A stretch of 64,000 nucleotides of DNA from the NCBI GenBank assembly GCA_020891255.1, contig BQFW01000012.1:1736001-1800000 (forward strand). Direction: 5' to 3'. The notes beneath the pieces were generated by a model that was given only the letters and a program-made list of their open reading frames with translations, did not search any database and was not told the DNA's origin. The DNA is from Entomortierella parvispora E1425. Taxonomy: Eukaryota > Fungi > Mortierellomycota. Below are positions 200 to 40,786 of this stretch, one piece after another (within the stretch, counting starts at the first letter, position 1; every line of letters begins with the position of its first letter). The position numbers and the translations under genes were made by a program.

Positions 200-2329
200 A
201 TGCTGTCAGGCACCGAGAGCAAGGCAAACTCTCCTTCTCAACCACACTCGACAATCCTCGGCTCCTCTTCCTCCTCTCTCTCTTCCTCGACTTCAATTAC
301 GTCCCGCCGTCTCTCTTCACCCCGGACGCGTCATCTCCGGCGTGCTCTTCTCAGTCTTGGTGTCCTCCTCTCAACCCCCGCTCAGTTTCGGACAGCAGTC
401 CTAACCGAGGCAGTAACATGTTTAAGCCCGAATCCTGATGACACTGCCAAAGCCGGGCAATCACTGGACTTGAGCTGGACCGTTTCGGACCTGGACACGT
501 ATATGTTCGACAGTCTTACTGCCACTCTTCTCTGCCTGGATGTTGGATCAGACCAATGGAGGGAGATTTCGACCCTGTTCCAGAACCAAGGCCTCCTTTT
601 CAACCTGGGCATGTACTCTTTCAAGCTACCCAACTGTGGCCCCACCGCCGACACGGGGGCAGTCCGGATCACAGCCGAGGGCTTCTCGGGAAGTCTTCAA
701 GAGGATTCGTCTTGTGTTTTCAATATTCAACAAGCCGCAACCTCCTTCCCACCCCTGCAGCCACCAAATCCACCTGTTCCATCCACAGGGGCCACATCAA
801 TAATTTCACCGCAAATTGCTACCGTTCCGCCTAGCTCCCAATCCACTTCTTCTTCAAGCACATCTTTCACGTCCACGCCACAATCGACTGGAGCTTCAGC
901 ACTACCCTCGCCTTCATCCAGCTCAGGCTCCGAATTGGGATCTGGTGAAAGCAGTTCACCTTCTGTTGGGCCTTCCGCTCATCCAACCTTCGTGCCACCG
1001 GTGCCCGCCGGTGGAAATGATGGTGGAAATGGGGAGGGTCACCGTGGAGGCGTGGAAGGTTTAAGCGATGGTAAAGACAAGACCCTTGGCGCTACCTTGG
1101 GATCCATTGGCATGGCAGCATGTCTTGCGGCTGTTGTTGTTTCTCTCCTAGTGATTCGACGCCGTCGAAGACGTCGAATTGAGGGTGGAGAGAACACCTT
1201 GGCTCGATCTATGGGCCTTGGTGGCGCAGAAGGCGGTGTCATGAAGGAGGCCAAGCGCCGGATACGACTTCAGCGTCGCCCCACAGAGGGGTACTTTTTC
1301 CAGATGGAGGACGAAGATGAGGATGCAACAGAGTTTAACGAAAAGGACCATGTGATCATCACCAGCAGGGACATGGAGGCGTCTCGGGAAGGCACAACCT
1401 CGTCAGCAACTAGTAGAGCCGCGACATCAACGACCACCGAGGGCGCGGGGGTTCTGCAAGCTCCACTACAGCCCACGCTTCCTCCAGTTGCGCTGCTGCC
1501 CAATGTCAAGCGCCGCTCATCTGTGCCGTCCGCAGGAATGTCCTCGCACAGCTACACAATGTCAACAATGAGATCTAGTCTTGAGACGTCGTCCGTAGTC
1601 CGTGAATACTGGGCCGCATCTATGGCCGCCAGAGCAGAACGTCGGATGGCAGACGGAATTTCTTCACCTGGAATGTCGGATGGATACGGATATGAAGAAG
1701 GCTCGATCTTTGGAGACCAGAGCCGGGACTCTGACTCACGTATGGCCGACATTTTGAGCCTAAGGACTGCAGGCACAGGAGACAGTTTTAGAGGCACGAT
1801 AGGCACCATGCGCCGCCAACATAGCAGGAACACCTTCAATTCGATCCTCGATGAGTCCTCCTCGATTGGTCACTATCGGTCCTTGACCATGAGTTTCTCC
1901 AGCACTCCTGATAGTATGATGATGTCCGAGGAAGAGTTCCTGGACCACCTACACATACAGCAACTGCACCAGTTCCAGCTTCAACACGAGCAGCAATACC
2001 ATTTTCAATATCCCCAGGAATACGGCTATGAACGCCAGCAGTATCCTCAGTATATCCCACGACCTTCAGGGCACTATCAACCATCACTGAACAGCTATCG
2101 GACTAGCTCTGTACCTTCACTCAACTCTACCAACGACCCTTTCAAGTCCTTTGATTCGAATGCAATTATCGTGGACGTGGACCCATTCTCAGACAGCAGA
2201 GCTGTCTCCCGTGCCTCGGTTCGCTCTGAAGAGGTTGGAAGTGGCAATCGCCTCGAGTTGCCAACAGGCCCATCTGACCGGTCCAACACCGATTTGCTCC
2301 GCTCATTCCCTGACCCGCCTATTCTCTAG
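200..2329 (+). CDS. Type I membrane, receptor/sensor-like protein (Cys-containing extracellular domain, S/T/P stalk, one TM, long cytoplasmic tail); paralog of 40845-43169
   Basis: Intronless 709-aa ORF. It has a hydrophobic segment (ALLSLGVLL), a ~110-aa domain with 4 Cys, an S/T/P-rich stalk, a TM (LGATLGSIGMAACLAAVVVSLLVI) followed by RRRRRRR, and tail motifs shared with the paralog. Confidence 0.8.
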   Translation: MLSGTESKANSPSQPHSTILGSSSSSLSSSTSITSRRLSSPRTRHLRRALLSLGVLLSTPAQFRTAVLTEAVTCLSPNPDDTAKAGQSLDLSWTVSDLDTYMFDSLTATLLCLDVGSDQWREISTLFQNQGLLFNLGMYSFKLPNCGPTADTGAVRITAEGFSGSLQEDSSCVFNIQQAATSFPPLQPPNPPVPSTGATSIISPQIATVPPSSQSTSSSSTSFTSTPQSTGASALPSPSSSSGSELGSGESSSPSVGPSAHPTFVPPVPAGGNDGGNGEGHRGGVEGLSDGKDKTLGATLGSIGMAACLAAVVVSLLVIRRRRRRRIEGGENTLARSMGLGGAEGGVMKEAKRRIRLQRRPTEGYFFQMEDEDEDATEFNEKDHVIITSRDMEASREGTTSSATSRAATSTTTEGAGVLQAPLQPTLPPVALLPNVKRRSSVPSAGMSSHSYTMSTMRSSLETSSVVREYWAASMAARAERRMADGISSPGMSDGYGYEEGSIFGDQSRDSDSRMADILSLRTAGTGDSFRGTIGTMRRQHSRNTFNSILDESSSIGHYRSLTMSFSSTPDSMMMSEEEFLDHLHIQQLHQFQLQHEQQYHFQYPQEYGYERQQYPQYIPRPSGHYQPSLNSYRTSSVPSLNSTNDPFKSFDSNAIIVDVDPFSDSRAVSRASVRSEEVGSGNRLELPTGPSDRSNTDLLRSFPDPPIL

Positions 2330-2418
2330 AGCTATACGCCTTTCGAGGCAACTGCCTCCTTTTCTCTTGCACCTTTCTTGATAGTTTCCTCGTCTTTCCT
2401 TTCCCCCACCCCATATAC

Positions 2419-2448
2419 CAGACAGACAGACAGACAGACAGACAGACA
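2419..2448. repeat. (CAGA)n microsatellite
   Basis: About 7 perfect CAGA copies downstream of the first gene. Confidence 0.9.
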
Positions 2449-2880
2449 TGCACATTTATGAAAGAGAAATAACATGAGTCCTTGTGAACATGTTTCAATT
2501 GTGTATTTGTCTCATTCGCTCTCTATTGAAGTATTGTACCTTTGCATGTGCCCGACAATGTAGCTCAATTTTGCGTGACAATGGTACCTAGATCCTTGAC
2601 TTGTGATGCAGAGGTTAAATATTGAAAGATCTCCCCGCCGTTGACGCGCGCTTCAAAATGTCTCTTCCGTAGCACGGGTGTCCATTGTTTATCAATTGTC
2701 GTTTACTGGCCATTGTATCTCTTGATCACCAGAGTCCTCTGTCCTCAACAGGGAGAATGCCAAGCCATGTAAATCATTGTTTCTCGTAAGGCCACTGGCA
2801 CAATACAGCAGCAAGGGGACTTATAATTCTATTTTGCAAAGCTATAAGCGTGGTATATGTGAAGTCCCTTTCCATTCCTA

Positions 2881-3911
2881 TCATGACGTGTAAAGCCCAT
2901 TTTCTTCGATCAACTTCTTGACTGAGGGTGTGACGCATCGATCGACAAGGGTCCAATTTTGGTCTTTGACGGCGTTTCTAACCACAGTGGAGGACATTTC
3001 TTTGATTTCCATCAAATGACCGATACTCCTGTCCTGGGTGCTGTCTGTGTTGAGGTCTTCGGCCTCTTCTTTGATTACAAGTTGGAGCACTTCCGACTTC
3101 TCAATCTTTATCTCCAGCTCTTCGTTCTCCTCTGTTAGATCGACCAGTGTGACTTTATCGCCATGTCCGCTGGATTGCACAAACTCCATCATTTCATCCC
3201 GTGTGCCATATCCGGGTCTGGAGGAGCAGATAACGTCGCACTGTTCAAAAAACGGGGCCATATCAGCGTGGACGTCCTTGTAGTATTTTGGGTCAAAGAG
3301 TCGTGTCATGGTATCATGACCCATGATCCAGGACAGCTGAATTGTGTTGGGTGGGTAGTGATCCAAGATCGGCTGTGCCTTGTCCATGAATCTTGCGTGG
3401 ATCTAGTGGAGAAAAAAAAAGTGATCAGAGACAGAAGTGAAGAGTTGAACGTAGGCAGAAGGAAGAGGAAGTTTGTTCTTACTATCAAACCAACAGCCAT
3501 GTGTCTGACAGCGGGATCGTTCTTTTCATTTCGAATGGCATCCATGGCCATGGCTTCCATCATTTCAAGTCGTTCGACTGCGCTGGCTCCTGTCTGTCCC
3601 TTGTCGACATTGTTGGTGGCAAGGAGAAGCAAGACAGCATCGCATCCGACTCTGGATGCGGCCTTCAAAAGCTGGTAATGGGCCTTTGTGGGCGGATTGA
3701 ATGAGGAATCCAGTACCGCGATTCGAGTCGGACGCGTGGTCGAGGCGGGTCTGTCGACAGAGAAGGGCCAGGAGGAGTTCGCGGTCAGAGTGGTCTGGAA
3801 GGGCTTGGGTGGTAGACCTTTGGCTTTTGCCAAGGCGAGCTGAAGGAATGGCTTTCGCATGGTTTGATTGGGAGGAATGAAATCAATGTAAGGATGAAAA
3901 GTTTGAGCCAT
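2881..3911 (-). CDS. POF1: Nicotinamide-nucleotide adenylyltransferase-like protein (POF1 / cytidylyltransferase-like fold), 2 exons
   Basis: Motifs IAVLDSSFNPPTKAH, LLLATNNVDK, IMGHDTMTRLFDPKYY and MSSTVVR. A GTAAGA...TAG intron (~3484-3404) joins the two ORF-track pieces as GLI|IHARFMDK. ATG taken at MAQTF (3911). Confidence 0.75.
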
Positions 3912-5218
3912 GCGCTGGGCGGACCGAAATTTCGCGGGGATTCTCAGTCCCTTTTTTGCCACCAGTGCCCACACCGCCTATCAACATGGCTTCTTTTAGC
4001 CAAGCGAGTCCACCTCTCCCCCCTCCGCCGACTCCGATACTGTCTTCCCATTGCTGCTCAGCTCTTGGTCCGCTCCTGCGTTGAGGAACGCGACTTTTTT
4101 TTTTTTTTTTTGGAAACACTGCTGTGCCACTATGAATCTGCGATTGCGGCTGGCGAGGCGCGAGCCACAAAAAGGTCGGGAAGAAACCATTGTCTGCTGA
4201 GTCCGACGATTGACTTGGGCTAAAGTGATCGTGATCTGGTTTCTCTAGGAACCAAGGTAGCTTGTCACACAGCTGTGTCGCTGGGCGGATGGGCAGTCGA
4301 GTGAAAGCAATGAGGTATTGATTCAGAAGTAACCCATTGTCTCGGCGCCAAGAGCACAGTGGCCACAAAGCTCTGCAATCTCTGCTGAGGACACTCGGGG
4401 TAAATCTGTTCATCCTCCTTCTTCTTGCTTTCTCATTACTCCGTATAATCCGTATAGTTGTACTTGCTTTTCTTCGCGTCTTGCACTCGCCTGAAGGACC
4501 CACTGATCTGTCTTGTCGCTTCGTCGCGGAAAGAACACCCTCCAAGGACTGATGGCAGGCCTACACTGTGCAGACATATAGGACAGTTTGGGCCAGAACC
4601 TTGCTCGTACGTGAACAGCCCCCTCCTCCTCTCCTGGAAGATGAGGAGAACTGTGGCAACGCCGCAATCGTTTCAAGAGCAATCACAAGAATCGCGAATC
4701 CAGGTAGCAGTGCGACCAGTGGTTTTCTTTTTTTTTTTGTTTTTTTCACTCCGAAAGTCGCGAGCATCGAGATTCTCGACAGTCGGGCACAACAATAATT
4801 TCGGTAGTGCGATTTTAGCCGCCTGACATGCCTTGGCCTTTGTTGTGCTACTGAACTGTGTTCCAGTTTCACTGAGCGTAGAGTTTGGGCCGGACCTGGA
4901 TTGGGCCTGTCCCCCTGCCCCTGCGGGTTGCCTGGTAAACGAGAAGGGCGCCACGCTTTTACCGGGGGATGGCTAATTTGCGAAAATCATATAAAAGGGC
5001 GCCGACCTCGAGAAAAAAACTTTGAATTCCTCTTTTCCTCTCTACATTCCCTGCCTCTGTGCACCCGCCTTCCCCTCTCCCTCCCTCCCTTCTCTTTTAC
5101 GATTCACGAGCCGGTCTCCACTCATCCTCCTCCTTTCCGCGACTCACTCACTCACTCACTCACTCCATCCTCGTCCTTGAAGTTTCCAGCTCATTCTAAA
5201 AAAAAGGAAGTTATAACT

Positions 5219-28567: not shown

Positions 28568-28639
28568 GGGCCGAACCGGGAATTGAACCCGGGACCTCTC
28601 GCACCCTAAGCGAGAATTATACCACTAAACCATCCGGCC
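28568..28639 (-). tRNA. tRNA-Pro(AGG), copy 1
   Basis: 72-nt cloverleaf: acceptor stem GGCCGGA/TTCGGCC, anticodon arm CTCGC-TTAGGGT-GCGAG, T arm CCGGG-TTCAATT-CCCGG. A T-run terminator follows. Confidence 0.97.
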
Positions 28640-28784: not shown

Positions 28785-28856
28785 GGCCGGATGGTTTAGT
28801 GGTATAATTCTCGCTTAGGGTGCGAGAGGTCCCGGGTTCAATTCCCGGTTCGGCCC
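28785..28856 (+). tRNA. tRNA-Pro(AGG), copy 2
   Basis: Identical 72-nt sequence followed by AATCTTTTTT (Pol III terminator). Confidence 0.97.
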
Positions 28857-30825: not shown

Positions 30826-30897
30826 GGGCCGAACCGGGAATTGAACCCGGGACCTCTCGCACCCTAAGCGAGAATTATACCACTAAACCATCCGGCC
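30826..30897 (-). tRNA. tRNA-Pro(AGG), copy 3
   Basis: Identical 72-nt cloverleaf. Confidence 0.97.
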
Positions 30898-31044: not shown

Positions 31045-31116
31045 GGCCGGATGGTTTAGTGGTATAATTCTCGCTTAGGGTGCGAGAGGTCCCGGGTTCA
31101 ATTCCCGGTTCGGCCC
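31045..31116 (+). tRNA. tRNA-Pro(AGG), copy 4
   Basis: Identical 72-nt cloverleaf followed by AATCTTTT. Confidence 0.97.
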
Positions 31117-31177
31117 AATCTTTTGTTTTCCTGGATGGCTTGTCCGATTCCTCATGCCTTGGTCCTTTTTTTTTTTT

Positions 31178-31227
31178 GGGTTTATCTATTTGACAACCCA
31201 GGTTGTTCGTTTTACCTGACAACCCAC
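31178..31227. repeat. Left terminal inverted repeat of the MULE
   Basis: GGGTTTATCTATTTGACAACCCAGGTTGTTCGTTTTACCTGACAACCCAC. Confidence 0.92.
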
Positions 31228-31315
31228 TCTATATTTGGTTAGTCTCGTTTTTTATTCGGCAACCCACCTGTCATTCCTCAATTGACAACCCAGGTTGCCA
31301 AACAAACGTTTATTT

Positions 31316-34300
31316 TTATGAGTGCTGTCTAGAATTGTGACCTTCCCCGCTGCACACTCCACACTTCGTTGATTTTTTTTTTGTCTCCATGCTACTCTTT
31401 ATCCGAGAAGTCCTCGGTCTGCCCTTCGTCTTTGTATAGTGAGGATCCTTCATACCTTCTTCGCCTGCCCCCCTCACAATGACACGGTTTAGGCCATCTT
31501 TAACTGTTTCGAATACTTCTGGATTGGAGTTCACGGTGTCCATGATATTCTTCATCAGGCCAGATATCTCTCCAATGCGGCGTTTTTTGGAAAGGTTGCG
31601 TTTATCAACCCCCGACAGGGATGGCACTGAGGGGAAAACCTTCATGATATCGCTCATGAAAGAAGAAGCAGGCTCTCCCTCTGCACTCCCCACCTGAGCG
31701 ACCGTCTTCTGCGTTTTTGCGCTCAAAAACGCCCCTGAGAGATCAAGATCTGTTAGGTCCTGCAGTTCTTCTTTAAACCACCGCATCGGAATAAGCCTGA
31801 CATGATACTTGCATCTGTCACTAACTTGCATCAGATGGAAATAGTGTCGACATACAAATCCGCTGTTTTGGAGGAGGAGGCAAGTACAAATGTACGAGCC
31901 ATCAGCCAGTAAAAGTATGTGCTGAAGTGACTTTCGCTCCGTGTCCAAGCGGAACGTCACGTCGAAGATTTGTACAATTCGATCAGAACCAACGATTGTC
32001 TGGATGGACTGGAGAGAGCTCATTTCGCGATCGTCTTTTGACGATCTCTCAATCTAAGGACAAAGAGAAGAATAACGGCTTAGTACCTCTATCTGGTCTT
32101 AGGATTGCGCTTGGGTATTGGAATGATGTACAAGTACTTACTTCCTCGAAATCACCTCCTTCGATTGATCGTGGAGCACAGGCGTCTATACCTGTGTGTG
32201 GATTGGACTGATACAAAACAGAGCGCGACATCTCTAACTTCATCTGACTTTTTGCTGCGATGCCAAGATAGCGATTGTTTGCATCGATAACATCGGCAAA
32301 CATTTGCTGAACAAACGTCGACGTTGCGGGATCAACCGTTGTATCCGTCTTGTAGAGAATATACTTTGAAGTCTGGGCTTCATTTGATAGCTTCTTTTCA
32401 ATTGCCTCGAACAGTGCTGGAAGGGACGTCTTGCCATTGACGGCCCTTTTGATGGCCGCATTCATACTCTCCACACGCTGAGTCGACTGCATTCCGGCGG
32501 TAAATCTTGTCCCAACCCAAGGCCAAGCCCAGTGCTCGCGCTTCTCGCTTATCCTTTTCAGGTAACCCTCAATCTTTGGCTTATCAACACCAAAGACCGC
32601 AACATGCTCTGACCATCTACGCTCAAAATCGGAGGCCGTAAGCGCGTTTCGGGTTGTCCAAAAAGCTGATATAAAATCATTCCAGTCTTTGCCTAGCGCT
32701 CCGTGGAGGTTTTTGTTCAGGTTTTGTCGCAGATGCCAGATACAGTTCAAGACGGTGGTCTTGCTTATAGTTGTGGCACAAGCGGCCTCCATAGCGGGAT
32801 CTTCGTCGACGAAAATGATATGAGGATATACGTTGTCGCTTGCCGCCAACAGTTGCTCTAGAATCCACTCATAGTCCTCCACTGATTCCCCCAGAAACCA
32901 ATGAACACCCTACCAAACGACTCTTTCCTGCATTGTCGATAATGACTATAACATTAAGAGGCATGCCGAAACGGTTCGTCTTGTAAGTGTTATCGCTGAT
33001 GACAACATCGCGGTAGCGTCGGTAGAGGTATCTTTGAGAAGGGCTCATCCAGAACATCCTTCTGAGCCGGCCATTTTCATCCAGATCGGTAGCAAAGAAC
33101 CAGTCTTTATCGTTGCGCGTTTTATCCTGTAGAATCTTGTGGAGCTCTGCAGCCTCGGAGCCACCGATGTGAGCACTGTTTTTTGCTTTCTGGATGGCAT
33201 TTGCGACTGTCCGAAGATCGAACGCTTTGTCTGGCCATTCATGTTGAAGCATGTAAACAATAAACTTGGGATCACATTTGCCTGCATGGGTGGTAATAAG
33301 CTGGAGCATTTCGGCACTGAGTCGTTTATCACGCTGGTTGGACTCCAGGATGTCGCATTTCTTGAGTTCGTGGCAGTGGTCTGTGACAAGGGAAGTAATA
33401 CGCCAACGTGGAAACAACTCCCTTGGAGACCGAACAACGATTTGGCATGGGCAGCACTCGCGGCTGGAGGTGCAATTGCGGTGCTTATCTGGGTCAACAT
33501 TCTTTTGCGGAACATGTTTTCCAGCCTTCTTGCAACCAAAAATTACTATTCATCGGCAAACCATACTTGTGTCAAAAAGAATTGATCCATAGAGAAAAAA
33601 AAACAACCTGCAGATTTTAAGTACCTACCTCGGGGACTTTGGCCATTCATCCTCTTGAGTCTGGACTGCATCCTTCTCAGGAAAAATCCTTGCTTGCGAG
33701 CCCATGCGTGGAGTTTTTCTTCTAGTTCTTCAAGAGTTTCATGCAACTGGCCGATATAAGGTGTCCACGGCAGGCTGTCACCCTCTTCAGCACTGTTGCC
33801 TGTGATGGCTATGGCGGCAGCCGCTACCTCTGCCCTGGCCCCACATGAAGAGGGTCCGTCAGCTGCAAGAGCATCACTTGTAATGGTTACGGCGGCGGCC
33901 GCTGCCTCTGCCCTGGCCCCACATGAAGAGGGTCCGACATTTAAGAAAGCATCACTTGTAATGGTCTCTCTAGAATAGCCGCATCGGCTACAGCTGTAGT
34001 GACCCCATCTTCGGTAGGTATCTCTTCATTGACTGCGACTTTTACAATGGCGTTGTCTGTGATGATTGAGTCAGTTGTAACTATGTCCGGATCATTTGCC
34101 GACACAATATCGAGATCAGCCACCCTTGCCACCCCTTGGCCTCGAGAAGCATGTGCTGCATGTTCGATCTAGATGAATTGAGTATTAATCTACGGTGGTC
34201 GGACAACGGGGGATTTGTGTCATACGTTACAAACAAGCAAAGATTCACCTTGTTGTAGCCGGTGGCCAGCTTCAAAAGCCTCAATCGATGATGTGCAGAT

Positions 34301-35395
34301 CGTTCGTGAGTCCAGAGTTCTATTTCAGGATTCATTCTCCTCTCGACAGCATTGATGGAGTTGACAGCGCACGATCCACTGCTAGCTGGTTGCCGTGGGA
34401 CATCGAGATGCTCGATGTGGCTGCTCCAACGATCTATATCAAGCCCACAGCATCTTATCCATTGTCGTATCGCTTGACAGGCCTCACGAGGTGTGGGATA
34501 AGAGAGGGAATCCCCAAATGAGATCTGACATTTAACGAAATCGACCTCGATCGCACCCCAATGAGATGGCATATAAACAATCGAGAATGCCTTTTCAACT
34601 CGCCCGCTTCGGAGCTCGTCCCTTTTCCATTCCAGGTATAGATTCTTTCGCCAGTTGTTGAGTTGAGTAGGTGTGATCAAAAGGTATCGATTGCTTGCCC
34701 CATACGACTCGGCAAAGAGCTGCAACACCGTGCGCACGACCTCGTCATTAATGAAGCACTCCTTCATGAGACAAAACGCGTTTCCAATGGCCAATGGCGC
34801 CTCAGAAGTTGGCTGAAACTCCCAATGGATGATGCCTGAGGTATTGGAAATTAGGTCGCGGATCCAATCGGCAAAGTTGCGATCCGAGACGGCATCGATC
34901 CAGTTAAACATCTCCATCGCTTGAATGATGAAAGTGTGCGTCTGCACCGCGCCGAGTAAGATTTTGACCGAGGCATGCGAGAAATCTCCAACGCCATGGA
35001 TGCGAATGCCCCACGCCTTTTGAGACACTGACGCACCAACTATAAATAAACATATTGTAACTGTGCTGGTCAGGAGTTTTGCCAATTGACACCTAAACGA
35101 AAAAGAGCAGCCGATGTTTTCTCTTATTGAACCTACGCAGCATTTCGTTGGCCTTCATAACAACATCTTGCGAAGGTAGCGTTTTGAGAATTGCAACTCT
35201 GGCTTCGAATATTCTCTCTTTGGGCGGTGGCAGCTCATATATGACCTCGACCTCGGTACAAGTTTTAGTAATCGGAAGGGGGATTTTCAGCAGTGCCTTG
35301 CCAGTTTGTAGCCTTTGCCAGTATTGGCTGTACATCACTTTCGATTCTTTCGACGTCCCTGGGTCGTCCACAAGATGATTAACAGCTGACGACAT
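31316..35395 (-). pseudogene. Ulp1(C48) protease-FAR1-MULE-SWIM-zinc knuckle fusion transposase, 5 exons, two frameshifts in this copy
   Basis: Exons 35395-35137, 35039-34249, 34168-33629, 33545-32142 and 32053-31316 have GT-AG introns. Their phases are all consistent once a 2-nt AG insertion (~33965-33972) and a 1-nt G insertion (32888-32892) are removed, giving ~1,242 aa. Protease motifs are INDEVV, HW, GDSL and QPASSGSC. The FAR1-like region reads C..CPC..HCH. The catalytic core is ISDNTY, FVDEDPAM, CIWH and RVESMN. SWIM is CTC...CRH and the knuckle is CGVCSGEGH. Confidence 0.85.
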
Positions 35396-35648
35396 CCTAT
35401 ATTTTTTTTAAATGCCAAAATAGACTGTATCAGCAAAACGCTCCAAAGAACTTCAGTAGGTACGAGACAGACAACAAACCCCGTACAGAGAAGTATGGCT
35501 CGGCTGAGGTTATAAGATTCTTGTGAATCTTCGTCGGTGCCTACTGCCGTAGCTTTATATCAGAAGTTCCAACGTTTCATTGTCTCCGCTTCGAGTAGAG
35601 TAACTCAAAACCCCGAACACTATTTGCAGTCTATGTGTATATACCATA

Positions 35649-38600
35649 TATGTACCATAGTCGGCCAAAAAAAAAAAAAGATCCATTTTGCCTTCTGTAT
35701 GCATGCAATTGACAGGCATCCTCTAAGTCATGGAGGGTGATAGTCCAGTGAGCTCTGACCTTGTCCGGTCCGGAAGACTGGAGCGGGTATCAGCCGTGTT
35801 TCTTTCCTCTGGTATTGATCTACCCCCGGTCAACCCTCAGTCAAAAAAAAAAAAAAAAAACCTCTGCATGCAAGAGTAGACCATTCCTAATTGGGACTTC
35901 TGGCGACTCGCAAGGACTCGCAAGACGGTATGTGTACCATGGTCGGCCAAAAGAAAAAAAAAAGTGCATTTTGCCTTCTGTATGCATGCAATTGACAGAC
36001 ATCCCCTAGGTCATAGAGGGTGATAGTCCAGTGGGCTCTGACCTTGTCCGGTCCGGAAGACTGGAGCGGGTATCAGCTGTGTTTCTTTCCTCTTGTATTG
36101 ATCTACCCCCGGTCAACCCTCGGTCAAATAAAAAAAAATCCTCTGCATGCAAGAGTAGACCATTCCTAATTGGGACTTCTGGCGACTCGCAAGGACTCGC
36201 AAGACGGTACGTGTACCATGATCGGCCAAAAGAAAAAAAAAAGTGCATTTTGCCTTCTGTATGCATGCAATTGACAGACATCCCCTAGGTCATAGAGGGT
36301 GATAGTCCAGTGGGCTCTGACCTTGTCCGGTCCGGAAGACTGGAGCGGGTATCAGCTGTGTTTCTTTCCTCTTGTATTGATCTACCCCCGGTCAACCCTC
36401 GGTCAAATAAAAAAAAAAAAGCCTTTGCATGCAACAGTAGACCATTCCTAATTGGGACTTCTGGCGACTCGCAAGGACTCGCAAGACGGTATGTGTACCA
36501 TGGTCGGCCAAAAGAAAAAAAAAAGTGCATTTTGCCTTCTGTATGCATGCAATTGACAGGCATCCTCTAAGTCATGGAGGGTGATAGTCCAGTGAGCTCT
36601 GACCTTGTCCGGTCCGGAAGACTGGAGCGGGTATCAGCCGTGTTTTCTTTCCTCTGGTATTGATCTACCCCCGGTCAACCCTCAGTCAAAAAAAAAAAAA
36701 AAAAACCTCTGCATGCAAGAGTAGACCATTCCTAATTGGGACTTCTGGCGACTCGCAAGGACTCGCAAGACGGTATGTGTACCATGATCGGCCAAAAGAA
36801 AAAAAAAAGTGCATTTTGCCTTCTGTATGCATGCAATTGACAGGCATCCCCTAGGTCATAGAGGATGATAGTCCAGTGAGCTCTGACCTTGTCCGGTCCG
36901 GAAGACTGGAGCGGGTATCAGCTGTGTTTCTTTCCTCTTGTATTGATCTACCCCCGGTCAACCCTCGGTCAAATAAAAAAAAATCCTCTGCATGCAAGAG
37001 TAGACCATTCCTAATTGGGACTTCTGGCGACTCGCAAGGACTCGCAAGACGGTACGTGTACCATGATCGGCCAAAAGAAAAAAAAAAGTGCATTTTGCCT
37101 TCTGTATGCATGCAATTGACAGACATCCCCTAGGTCATAGAGGGTGATAGTCCAGTGGGCTCTGACCTTGTCCGGTCCGGAAGACTGGAGCGGGTATCAG
37201 CCGTGTTTTCTTTCCTCTGGTATTGATCTACCCCCGGTCAACCCTCAGTCAAAAAAAAAAAAAAAAAACCTCTGCATGCAAGAGTAGACCATTCCTAATT
37301 GGGACTTCTGGCGACTCGCAAGGACTCGCAAGACGGTATGTGTACCATGATCGGCCAAAAGAAAAAAAAAAGTGCATTTTGCCTTCTGTATGCATGCAAT
37401 TGACAGGCATCCCCTAGGTCATAGAGGATGATAGTCCAGTGAGCTCTGACCTTGTCCGGTCCGGAAGACTGGAGCGGGTATCAGCTGTGTTTCTTTCCTC
37501 TTGTATTGATCTACCCCCGGTCAACCCTCGGTCAAATAAAAAAAAAAAGCCTTTGCATGCAACAGTAGACCATTCCTAATTGGGACTTCTGGCGACTCGC
37601 AAGGACTCGCAAGACGGTATGTGTACCATGGTCGGCCAAAAGAAAAAAAAAAGTGCATTTTGCCTTCTGTATGCATGCAATTGACAGGCATCCTCTAAGT
37701 CATGGAGGGTGATAGTCCAGTGAGCTCTGACCTTGTCCGGTCCGGAAGACTGGAGCGGGTATCAGCCGTGTTTCTTTCCTCTGGTATTGATCTACCCCCG
37801 GTCAACCCTCAGTCAAAAAAAAAAAAAAAAAAACCTCTGCATGCAAGAGTAGACCATTCCTAATTGGGACTTCTGGCGACTCGCAAGGACTCGCAAGACG
37901 GTATGTGTACCATGATCGGCCAAAAGAAAAAAAAAAGTGCATTTTGCCTTCTGTATGCATGCAATTGGCAGACATCCCCTAGGTCATAGAGGATGATAGT
38001 CCAGTGAGCTCTGACCTTGTCCGGTCCGGAAGACTGGAGCGGGTATCAGCTGTGTTTCTTTCCTCTTGTATTGATCTACCCCCGGTCAACCCTCGGTCAA
38101 ATAAAAAAAAATCCTCTGCATGCAAGAGTAGACCATTCCTAATTGGGACTTCTGGCGACTCGCAAGGACTCGCAAGACGGTACGTGTACCATGATCGGCC
38201 AAAAGAAAAAAAAAAGTGCATTTTGCCTTCTGTATGCATGCAATTGACAGACATCCCCTAGGTCATAGAGGGTGACAGTCCAGTGGGCTCTGACCTTGTC
38301 CGGTCCGGAAGACTGGAGCGGGTATCAGCTGTGTTTCTTTCCTCTTGTATTGATCTACCCCCGGTCAACCCTCGGTCAAATAAAAAAAAAAATCCTTTGC
38401 ATGCAACAGTAGACCATTCCTAATTGGGACTTCTGGCGACTCGCAAGGACTCGCAAGACGGTACGTGTACCATGGTCGGCCAAAAGAAAAAAAAAGATAC
38501 ATTTTGCCTTCTGTATGCATGCAATTGACAGACATCCCCTCGGTCATAGAGGATGATAGTCCAGTGGGCTCTGACCTTGTCTGGATCAGAAGACTGGAGC

Positions 38601-38833
38601 GGGTATCAGCTGTGTTTCTTTCCTCTTGTATTGATCTACCCCCGGTCAACCCTCGGTCAAATAAAAAAAAAGCCTTTGCATGCAACAGTAGACCATTCCT
38701 AATTGGGACTTCTGGCGACTCGCAAGGACTCGCAAGACGGTACGTGTACCATGGTCGGCCAAAAGAAAAAAAGATACATTTTGCCCTCTGTATGCATGCC
38801 ATTGACAGACATCCCCTAGGTCATAGAGGATGA
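35649..38833. repeat. Tandem array of 11 full and 1 partial units of 279-284 bp inside the MULE
   Basis: Units start (GTGTACCAT) at ~35649, 35932, 36211, 36493, 36777, 37056, 37340, 37621, 37905, 38184, 38465 and 38744. They differ mainly in poly-A length and in roughly a dozen substitutions. Confidence 0.97.
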
Positions 38834-38991
38834 TGGTCCGACATGTTCTTCTGGTTCGAAACAAAGGGACTGACTCGACTGACTCGTACATCCAGGCTTC
38901 TTGTGTCAGCAACTCCCACATGTATAAATATGTGTACTTGCGGCATCCAGTTCTGTATCTTGTCCTCCTCATCGTTCTCACCTCTTCCAAC

Positions 38992-39843
38992 ATGCCTCGT
39001 GGTGCTTGCACTTACGGCTATTGCGCGCTAGGTCTCCTCCCCCCTGCCGAACCCAAGACCAAAAATCAGAAGAACCATGTTGCAGGGTATCACGTCGACA
39101 ACCCCATCAAGTTCATGTGCGGGTACACTGATCGACAAGTCACCTTTAGTCGAATTCCCACAAAACACATGGATTTCGTCTGCTACTGTGGCCTGACGTT
39201 CACCCTTAACTCTTCGATCCATCGCCATTACCATTACTGTGCCGTTGCCAGGGACGCCGCCCTAAATGCAATCGCACATCCACCTCCTCCTGGTGCAGGT
39301 GGTGCAGGCGATGGCAATGGCGTTATTGTTGCGCCGGCGCCTCCTTCAACGGCCCTGGTGGTAGCGGAGCGCAGCGTCGGGAGCATTCTGGAGGAAAAGT
39401 TGATTGAGCAACATCAAGCCTTCCTGGAGACGTTCACAGGACAGAGCGCGAAGCTCGTCGAGAGCATGACCCAGTCTCAGTTGTCGTTTCTGAACACCTT
39501 CACCGCTTCGTATGCTGAACAAGCTGTGGCACATCAGCGCAGCATCGCTGAACATAACCGCTTGGCCTTAGAGGAGCAGCGCACGGCCCTCGAGGAGCAG
39601 CGAGCTGCCATTGAGATGCAGCGAGCAGCTGTTGAGGAACAGAGAGTGTTCTACAATCGCCATCAAAACAATCAAGCAGAGATAATGGCCGAGCAGAAGC
39701 TTACAAGGGACGAGGTTAGAAACCTCATGTCACTCAAGCGCGATCGATCTTTCACGTTGGAAGTCAGCGAGCGAGCACTCAAAGGCCTTCAGAGTGACCC
39801 ATCTTACATGGTCAGCCCCTGCCAGGACGACGAGGACATGTGA
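38992..39843 (+). CDS. MULE cargo gene: two atypical zinc-finger-like motifs plus coiled coil (283 aa)
   Basis: Intact ATG-TGA ORF. Motifs CTYGYC-x17-HVAGYH and CYCGLTFTLNSSIHRHYHYC, a Pro/Gly linker, and LEEQR heptad repeats. Confidence 0.75.
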   Translation: MPRGACTYGYCALGLLPPAEPKTKNQKNHVAGYHVDNPIKFMCGYTDRQVTFSRIPTKHMDFVCYCGLTFTLNSSIHRHYHYCAVARDAALNAIAHPPPPGAGGAGDGNGVIVAPAPPSTALVVAERSVGSILEEKLIEQHQAFLETFTGQSAKLVESMTQSQLSFLNTFTASYAEQAVAHQRSIAEHNRLALEEQRTALEEQRAAIEMQRAAVEEQRVFYNRHQNNQAEIMAEQKLTRDEVRNLMSLKRDRSFTLEVSERALKGLQSDPSYMVSPCQDDEDM

Positions 39844-40091
39844 AAGACAGATAGTGCGCAATCCCACGTCGACGAAGTGTAACAGGTTATGTTCGCAATT
39901 ATTCAATAAAAATATTCTTGCGAAATATCTTCTGATGCTATGGCGGACGAGGTGGACTTTTTTTTTTTTTACATATTATTTGCTATGTCGAGACAGTGAA
40001 GCGAAGTGCGAGAACAAACTACTAACAATGAAGCCCGAATCCCCGCGCAACAAATGCCACGACTCATCGCTGTTTAATAAAGAATAAAATG

Positions 40092-40748
40092 TTACAAAAG
40101 TGTCGATATATGAACCTGGCCACGCACACCAGCCAGTAAGCGCTGGTCTGCCAGCTTAAGGTCATCTTGGGCATCTGGGCAACGGCCTTGGTGGTGGCCG
40201 GAGTGAGGTTTACCGCATTGGCAGGTGTCTGGTGGTAAGATCGTAGCAAATGCATTGTTCCAAGGTTGGCCTCGCTGTGCTTGCTTCTTCATCTTGGAGC
40301 GGATGCCTTGAGTCTTCTCCCAGGCAATAGTAACCTCGCCGCGTGTCTTCCGGATACGTGCAAGAGTATCCCTATCCTGACGACGGATAAGTTGATGAGC
40401 AACTGCGACCACGACCGAGTGAGGGCCTTTAATAATTGGAGTCCAGGCCTTGATCGAAGCGCAGTGTAACACTCCTTGGTAGGCAGTGACGACCGACTGA
40501 GCCGATGCCAACGGGGCTGGTGCCAACGGGCTGGTGATCTGTCCCCTCACAGGAGGACAGGTCGTTGGCGAGTCATGGAAGGCAGAGTACAATGATGTCC
40601 ACAAAGCCGTGTCCGATGGCTGGTACCATGGAGGCGGTTTCGGGCGGCAACTTCGGGTTTGCGGGCTTGTTGCGAACGAGGTGGAGCTCACTATCTGACA
40701 ACCCAGGTTTCCATGCAATTTTCCAAAGTGTGACTGGTGGGTTGTCAA
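40092..40748 (-). other. Open frame near the right end of the MULE; possible second cargo gene (no in-frame ATG until late)
   Basis: 218-codon open frame with a basic helix (RRQDRDTLARIRKTRGEV) and CQCGKPHSGHHQGRC. Start unresolved. Confidence 0.3.
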
Positions 40749-40786
40749 ACAAAACGAACAACCTGGGTTGTCAAATAGATAAATCC
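40737..40786. repeat. Right terminal inverted repeat of the MULE
   Basis: Reverse complement is GGATTTATCTATTTGACAACCCAGGTTGTTCGTTTTGTTTGACAACCCAC. Confidence 0.92.

Follow-up and report, generated by a model that had tools for sequence, protein, structure and literature searches.

Does the SUMO-protease-like domain encoded beside a Mutator-type transposase in the fungus Entomortierella parvispora E1425 belong to the transposase protein itself, and does alternative splicing decide whether the two are made together? The locus lies in a 64,000-nucleotide stretch of contig BQFW01000012.1 (assembly GCA_020891255.1, positions 1,736,001 to 1,800,000 of the forward strand), hereafter the window, whose own numbering is used throughout. 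A first-pass annotation, made from the letters alone, had placed a SUMO-protease domain N-terminal to the transposase and had suggested that two splice acceptors 21 nt apart switch between a protease-only protein and the fusion. We find the fusion well supported as real, conserved and apparently intact: relatives are collinear with it, some as a single open reading frame (ORF), and short-read contigs of the same sample carry the frame without interruption. The tandem-acceptor switch is not supported by comparison of the related sequences, in which it appears as an unconserved coincidence.

Gene structure and the join between protease and transposase

We consider it likely that the locus is a single five-exon gene of an autonomous Mutator-like element (MULE), whose product is one protein of ~1,243 amino acids (aa) joined through the distal of the two acceptors. 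The gene and its predicted parts are as follows, with slashes marking splice junctions.

31316-35395, minus strand: whole gene, five exons, inside the MULE 31178-40786, which is bounded by terminal inverted repeats (TIRs)
35137-35395, minus strand: exon 1; ATG at 35395, 86 codons plus one base, donor TGC/GTAGGT (35137/35136)
35040-35136, minus strand: intron 1; 97 nt by the window letters and 96 nt by the reads
34249-35039, minus strand: exon 2; Ulp1/SENP-type protease domain (MEROPS C48, clan CE), 263 aa
34169-34248, minus strand: intron 2; 80 nt, phase 0, weak donor AAG/GTGAAT at 34249/34248, distal acceptor TAG at 34171-34169
34169-34191, minus strand: proximal AG (34191-34190) and the 21-nt segment ATTAATACTCAATTCATCTAG
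33629-34168, minus strand: exon 3; acidic/Ala-rich linker, 78-bp duplication and N-terminal third of FAR1
33810-33965, minus strand: linker duplication, two tandem copies of 78 bp (26 aa) starting at 33965 and 33887
33546-33628, minus strand: intron 3; GTAGGT...GAATAG, phase 1, splitting the FAR1 domain
32142-33545, minus strand: exon 4; remainder of FAR1, then the MULE/RNase-H-like transposase core
32054-32141, minus strand: intron 4; GTAAGT...CTAAG...CCTTAG, 88 nt
31316-32053, minus strand: exon 5; SWIM-like CxC...CxH motif CTCLLLQNSGFVCRH, C-terminal CCHC-like knuckle, stop TAA at 31318-31316

In the proposed protein, residues ~1-350 would comprise a conserved N-terminal segment and the protease domain, residues ~351-480 a low-complexity linker with the 26-aa duplication, and the part after ~480 a DNA-binding domain of FAR1 type, followed by the DDE/RNase-H core of the MULE and by zinc motifs resembling SWIM and CCHC. 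Removal of intron 2 at the distal acceptor (34170-34169) would bring the protease in frame with a transposase that has no start codon of its own. Indeed, the FAR1 frame is shut upstream by a TGA (~34025-34023) and no ATG precedes the FAR1 domain, just as the first-pass annotation had reported. Since the first residue of exon 4 falls on position 33 of the FAR1 profile, the first third of this domain is encoded in exon 3; and since the linker passes into this part of FAR1 within exon 3, where no Met occurs ahead of the residues RRMQ, the transposase needs the upstream exons. The equivalent of exon 3 in Lobosporangium transversale (L002, 9202-9626) contains no Met whatsoever.

The same join recurs in relatives. 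The order Ulp1-linker-FAR1-MULE is found on one strand in L002, L003, L007 and L009, and in P0009 and P0024, both from metagenome contigs, a single ORF leads from the protease across a long linker to FAR1, whose N-terminal half it includes; we took both to be intron-blind ORF calls. Gene models with this join exist in Dissophora (P0004), Gryganskiella (P0015), Mortierella sp. (P0005) and Podila (P0154). More distant fused proteins, namely P0140, P0121 and P0144 (source Tilletia controversa), are collinear with the window exons at 27-35% identity. P0140 is 1,180 aa long, is encoded without interruption (1183-4725 on its contig) and matches Peptidase_C48, FAR1 and MULE in Pfam. P0121 is an uninterrupted, GC-rich Ulp1+FAR1+MULE ORF of 1,446 aa, present on three Logan contigs of ~4.64 kb with nearly identical ends (L012, L013 and L014, from SRR5754732, SRR5754728 and SRR5754726, respectively); one of these contigs runs straight into an Illumina adapter, which suggests a defined molecule end such as that of a transcript, and the three may represent complete transcripts from a fused gene of their source organism. 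The 557-aa gene model of L001 (Mortierella sp. GBA30) was set aside as evidence on its own, this copy being decayed, with a stop and frameshifts.

A search of 1.84 billion cluster representatives with the exon 2 domain (263 aa) gave 157 homologues at E ≤ 1e-3, and those with a named source are Mortierellomycota (Dissophora, Gryganskiella, Lobosporangium, Linnemannia, Haplosporangium, Podila and Mortierella sp.). A further protein search with the protease exon returned four relatives only, at 48-60% identity, and no near-identical protein. The catalytic set consists of His (34563-34561), Asp (34512-34510), Gln (34392-34390) and Cys (34371-34369), numbered H246, D263, Q303 and C310 in the fusion and H159, D176, Q216 and C223 in the domain, each of them at least 90% conserved in a 30-sequence alignment. 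When the profile of this alignment was compared with the Protein Data Bank (PDB), it matched SENP1 (4.5e-12) and Ulp1 (5e-11), as well as SENP2, SENP3 and SENP5 (1e-7 to 1e-9), and the catalytic residues aligned with those of SENP1. An AlphaFold2 model of the domain reached a predicted local distance difference test (pLDDT) score of 93.8 and a predicted template-modelling (TM) score (pTM) of 0.88. The top 30 or more Foldseek hits in the PDB were all SENP, Ulp1 or NEDP1, with target-normalised TM scores of 0.70-0.74 to SENP1, SENP2 and Ulp1 and up to 0.76 to SENP5. Judged from profile and model, this is a divergent but complete C48 domain, and its four catalytic residues suggest that the cysteine protease is probably active.

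Compared with yeast Ulp1 (1EUV) and human SENP1 and SENP2, the fungal domain has a like fold and the His-Asp-Cys triad and oxyanion Gln in common, but its identity to solved structures is just 11-15%, and both an extra conserved N-terminal segment of ~90 aa and the attachment to a transposase are found on the fungal side only. The catalytic spacing is 17 residues from H to D, the same as in Ulp1, and 7 from Q to C, where Ulp1 has 6. The N-terminal segment encoded by exon 1 is conserved, residues ~17-98 of P0001, P0005, P0006, P0008 and P0011 aligning with it at 27-60% identity (tblastn); intron 1 is missing from some relatives (L001, L004).

Downstream of the linker, the predicted protein is a MULE transposase with a MULE/RNase-H-like DDE core, as indicated by Pfam profiles. 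From the start of exon 4 onward, FAR1 is matched at positions 33-89 of 90 (E 3.4e-5), a score that stays under the gathering threshold, the domain being split by intron 3; the position of this intron, after ...PRG, is shared by P0004, P0009, L001 and L002. Within exon 4, ZSWIM1-3_RNaseH-like matches at 1e-7, and MULE at 1e-6 and 1.8e-5 on either side of a frameshift in the window letters (see below), with PF10551 and PF21056 both matched across the two sides; the relative L009 matches PF10551 at 1.3e-22. Exon 5 aligns with the C-terminal parts of P0140 and P0121 and with L002, L003 and L009. The CxC...CxH motif is visible in its translation, and the Pfam SWIM profile gave no match there.

The 26-aa duplication reported earlier for the linker is borne out: Tandem Repeats Finder gives a repeat at 33801-33965 with a period of 78, 2.1 copies and 86% matches, a direct count finds 68 of the 78 bp identical, and a separate contig of the short-read sample X1 (introduced below) spans both copies. 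The linker between protease and FAR1 is hypervariable among relatives, from ~130 aa here to more than 360 aa (P0004; L009, 1480-2571), and nearly every lineage has its own tandem repeats in it, either acidic or Ser/Thr/Pro-rich (L009, P0004, P0009, P0010, P0011, P0154). On this sequence comparison, the duplication is one case of a general tendency of the linker to internal repeats.

Short-read contigs and the integrity of the reading frame

In the letters of the window, the frame that starts at the distal acceptor runs for 75 codons only and ends at a TAA (33943-33941), and the duplication and FAR1 lie in another frame than the start of this exon. A frameshift likewise divides the MULE domain near 32888, in a G5 run, with positions 1-38 of its Pfam profile on one side and 43-99 on the other. 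We checked the region against Logan short-read contigs of the same sample (X1) at 85% likeness, and also compared X3, X9 and X4; none of these four showed splice joints. Among the runs listed, X1 was the sole sample containing the locus, with two runs, both of DNA, and a search restricted to RNA runs listed none. Over 31184-35600 (4.4 kb), the X1 contigs display 0 substitutions and four single-base indels relative to the window:

32888, exon 4: one base fewer in X1 contig 6 (G5 to G4); closes the MULE frameshift
33594, T run of intron 3: one base more in X1 (T9 to T10)
33967, exon 3: one base more in X1 contig 8 (G to GG, GAGAGA to GAGGAGA on the coding strand); unites the two linker frames
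35100, T run of intron 1: one base fewer in X1 (T5 to T4)

The base missing from the window in exon 3 sits between 33968 and 33967. With the four read differences applied, exons 35395-35137, 35039-34249, 34168-33629, 33545-32142 and 32053-31316 give a coding sequence of 3,732 nt, that is, 1,243 codons and a stop. Two of the four indels (32888 and 33967) thus remove both frameshifts and leave an intact 1,243-aa fusion ORF in the reads, close to the ~1,242 aa first proposed. The earlier statement that the distal acceptor reads through to the fusion holds for the X1-corrected sequence and fails for the window letters as they stand. Because the two versions differ by four single-base length indels and 0 substitutions over 4.4 kb, we attribute the two coding frameshifts to assembly consensus errors rather than decay, as the most likely explanation. 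An extra GT-AG intron joining the two linker frames in the window was also considered and rejected in favor of the read indel, as it offers only implausible acceptors (GAGAG/ACC, with a 283-nt intron, and similar ones). The assembly apparently carries ORF-breaking indel errors, and other frameshifted genes of the same genome may be artefacts as well.

Several points weigh against the reading as one fused gene. The removal of all four introns is itself predicted from the DNA. Several near-identical copies may have been collapsed into one consensus in the X1 contigs, with the window copy truly frameshifted; even if it carries real indels, the fusion would still be encoded by the family. No Pfam family, PF02902 (Peptidase_C48) included, matches window positions 34249-35037 on the minus strand even at E ≤ 1, a miss of the single-sequence scan that we ascribe to the divergence of the domain, and the C48 assignment draws on profile, fold and transitive evidence, the homologue P0140 matching PF02902 at 3.2e-6. 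Lastly, many relatives are recorded as proteins of ~360-390 aa ending just past the domain, and a genuine protease-only product may exist. We rejected these entries as stand-alone proteases: since their tails start with Val (GTx) after ...TGY/FSK and are mutually unrelated, we read them as intron-blind gene callers running through the intron 2 donor.

Intron 2 and the proposed acceptor switch

The components of the switch are present in the window as first described. The phase-0 donor lies at 34248 (AAG/GTGAAT), splicing to the proximal AG gives INTQFI-stop and a protein of 356 aa, and the distal AG is that of the TAG stop codon of this very product. Conservation of both acceptors, which a switch would call for, was not found among relatives. 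Intron 2 could be read in six relatives (L002, L005, L006, L007, L009 and L011), all of which have the phase-0 donor after ...TGY/FSK (...TAYST in L002) and one obvious acceptor each:

L005: TAG/ATCGAAC
L006: TAG/ATCGAAT
L007: TAG/ATCGAC
L009: CAG/ATTGAT
L011: TAG/CCTAGC
L002: TAG/CTTTCT

Only the distal acceptor is kept in these relatives. The TAG/ATCGA of the window recurs in L005, L006 and L007, so that there, and with CAG/ATTGAT in L009, even the opening codons of the exon (Ile-Glu or Ile-Asp) are conserved; an additional AG within the last 30 nt of intron 2, such as the one at -23 in the window, occurs in 0 of the 6. The proximal AG is therefore private to the family of the window and probably a minor or cryptic site. 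At the protein level, protease and transposase are joined in P0015 and P0024 without any Val codon of donor type behind the conserved motif, so this lineage appears to have the fusion without the intron and hence no possibility of a switch.

Intron 2 measures 80 nt with the distal and 59 nt with the proximal acceptor, the other introns being 84-96 nt and intron 2 of the relatives 80-109 nt. By reading of the sequence, the proximal AG stands 9 nt past a branch-like motif, CCGAC, which aligns with CTAAC or CTGAC of L005 and L006 and lies 30 nt upstream of the distal AG; a branch-to-AG spacing of 9 nt is usually too short for use. Another such motif, TTAAT, is found inside the 21-nt segment, 16 nt upstream of the distal AG, and TATGAC occurs ~30 nt upstream of the proximal AG. 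TTAAT could serve the distal site and TATGAC the proximal one, so that use of the latter is physically possible. A further candidate acceptor at 34157-34156 (CATGCAG/CAC) was rejected as it leads to a 24-codon dead end. An extra AG in an 80-nt intron is within chance, and by rough estimate the in-frame TAG arrangement would be a ~1-in-6 to 1-in-10 event. Under the rules of nonsense-mediated decay (NMD), a stop followed by a long 3′ stretch and introns makes a transcript unstable; since ~2.9 kb and two introns separate the proximal stop from the normal 3′ end downstream, its transcript is a predicted NMD substrate rather than a stable protease-only mRNA. In the metagenomic relative L003 (1794-1960), four tandem units of ~21 nt follow the intron 2 donor, each ending in CA(C/A)AG, which would give in-frame tandem acceptors 21 nt apart, a stop-free variant of the tandem-acceptor theme.

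How, then, could a protease-only product arise, if at all? Regulated use of both acceptors, with the proximal one giving the 356-aa protease, the distal one the fusion and a control of their ratio like that of P-element IVS3, seems improbable to us. Both AGs exist and their products match the description, a pyrimidine-rich stretch precedes the proximal AG, either site has a plausible branch motif, and the donor GTGAAT is weak, a property that is often paired with alternative splicing outcomes; but the proximal AG is missing from all six readable relatives while the distal one is kept, the P0015/P0024 lineage is seemingly intronless at this point, NMD is to be expected from the stop with ~2.9 kb and two introns behind it, and the arrangement is statistically unremarkable. 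It is similarly doubtful that the proximal AG arose of late as a dosage valve, some of the transcripts being spliced to 34189 and meeting the TAG after six codons. We give little credence as well to the outcomes imagined for such transcripts, namely that they are degraded, capping transposase output, or yield a free 356-aa protease acting in trans on all copies. Were the valve real, branch-point choice would set the protease:transposase ratio, and a true splice switch would be a fungal case of splicing-controlled transposase dosage. Retention of intron 2, which would end in the window after 405 aa with ...MIRT-stop, is unlikely but deserves somewhat more attention, intron retention being the commonest mode of alternative splicing in fungi. 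Unspliced read-through meets a stop in the window and, after 10-45 codons, in L002, L005, L006, L007, L009 and L011; the Lobosporangium gene model XP_021886043.1 (389 aa) has exactly this form, and donors are weak (A at +5) in the window, L005 and L006 and, by eye, with A at +5 also in L003. Yet chance alone would place stops in an intron left unspliced, L003 lacks any, so that read-through there still yields the fusion, gene models and intron-blind ORF calls are no proof of a protein, and the NMD argument holds here too.

A different route to a free protease would be that the fusion is a polyprotein, the CE-clan protease cutting the linker in cis and releasing itself and the transposase. Viral CE-clan proteases (adenain, poxvirus I7) process polyproteins in this manner, the fold belongs to clan CE with poxvirus I7L in the Foldseek list, and a long, variable, low-complexity linker would be an accessible substrate; however, the idea is purely analogical, no Gly-Gly or comparable motif was seen in the linker of the window copy, and the linkers of relatives are unrelated in sequence with no common motif evident by eye, all of which makes self-processing very unlikely. 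That the window frameshifts are real, leaving a pseudogene whose protease and transposase reflect the usual two-gene layout, is scarcely credible. The window letters do have a stop after 75 exon 3 codons and a MULE frameshift, but four length indels with 0 substitutions over 4.4 kb are a consensus-error signature, no reading provides the transposase with a start codon, and fused single ORFs exist elsewhere.

We thus return to the single fused protein as the likely reading. Constitutive use of the distal acceptor would produce a protease-transposase of ~140 kDa (at about 110 Da per residue). Speculatively, the protease might ride with the transposase to its DNA targets. Our guess is that it could there strip off SUMO, or some modifier akin to it, acting either on the transposase or on chromatin or repair factors present where transposition takes place.

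Related elements and genomic setting

Ulp1 domains in transposons are already known, and the N-terminal, spliced fusion is a variant of this theme. Published cases include Mutator elements from Arabidopsis, maize, rice, melon, hydra and lancelet (PMC2836005) and MULEs and CACTA elements from grapevine (PMC2528002). In the Arabidopsis KI-MULEs, the domain resides in a separate gene, KIU, one of the three genes of the element (PMC13317346); the remark in the first-pass annotation that the plant protein is encoded separately is accurate for these elements. Ginger1 transposases carry a C-terminal Ulp1 fusion, an Ulp1-transposase fusion has also been reported for some Mutator transposases, and Bao et al. 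raised the possibility of a role like the one guessed at above for Ulp1 and OTU domains in both Ginger1 and Mutator transposons (PMC2836005). For fungal cut-and-paste transposons, the portions of the survey by Muszewska et al. (2017) considered here recognise C48 as an accessory domain and list MULEs in Mortierella, and they describe neither an N-terminal spliced fusion nor intron structure nor the family of the window (PMC5751038). A eukaryote-wide survey of MULEs leaves Ulp1 unmentioned (PMC6446971). A mortierellomycete MULE with Ulp1 spliced onto the N-terminus of its transposase was found nowhere in the literature searched.

The plant Ulp1 MULEs (KI-MULEs/VANDAL, melon CUMULE, rice, grapevine) also belong to the Mutator superfamily with a C48 domain, and resemble the fungal element in their accessory gene and their array of internal repeats (PMC13317346, PMC2528002, PMC2836005). 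They differ in that the KI-MULEs keep Ulp1 in the separate KIU whereas here the domain is predicted to be spliced in frame onto the N-terminus of the transposase, and in that the fungal element has a mortierellomycete host and clear 50-nt TIRs. Ginger1 is likewise a cut-and-paste transposase fused to an Ulp1-type (in some cases OTU) domain (PMC2836005), but with a Gypsy-integrase-like DDE, the protease at the C-terminus and animal hosts, in contrast to a MULE with an N-terminal protease. With IVS3 of the Drosophila P element, the likeness is one of idea only, namely splicing upstream of the catalytic part that leads to a truncated product. The truncated P-element product is a DNA-binding repressor whereas the fungal one would be an enzyme domain, and on the fungal side the proximal acceptor is not conserved and the isoforms are predicted from sequence.

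To our knowledge, Ulp1-type domains recur in unrelated DNA transposons (MULE, CACTA, Ginger1) and a function has been demonstrated for none of them. Here, the read-supported ORF is intact, the protease is obligatorily joined to the transposase and the host group includes culturable fungi. The family of the window element is also very young, as the X1 contigs show no variant letters in the region. This combination would make it well suited to asking whether transposition depends on deSUMOylation or on self-processing.

In runs bearing the same species label from other samples (X3, X4, X9), the internal words of the element were found at 0.00. At window 31176-31227, these runs contain pieces that resemble the TIR at 85-90% likeness, part of them with a very high word depth, and X1 itself has a 670-nt contig that shares the TIR alone and diverges beyond it. 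Such patterns suggest autonomous copies that are polymorphic between strains and derivatives that share their TIRs.

The ends of the 9.6-kb element are the following:

31178-31227, no strand assigned: left TIR, 50 nt, 92% complementary to the right TIR
40737-40786, no strand assigned: right TIR, 50 nt, pairing with 31178-31227

These 50-nt arms, 92% complementary, are TIRs of the kind that define a MULE. MULEs make target-site duplications of 8-11 bp; both flanks of the element are T runs, with which a poly-T duplication would be compatible, though the runs set no limits to it. No further copies of the element occur within the 64-kb window. A search of a contig collection made up of bacteria and archaea gave no relative, which is uninformative for a fungal element. 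The left TIR begins 61 nt past the 3′ end of a tRNA-Pro (AGG) gene (31045-31116, plus strand) and, since both flanks are T runs, the MULE appears to have inserted in the poly-T terminator stretch behind this gene. Further tRNA-Pro genes lie at 28568-28639, 28785-28856 and 30826-30897, the four forming two head-to-head pairs.

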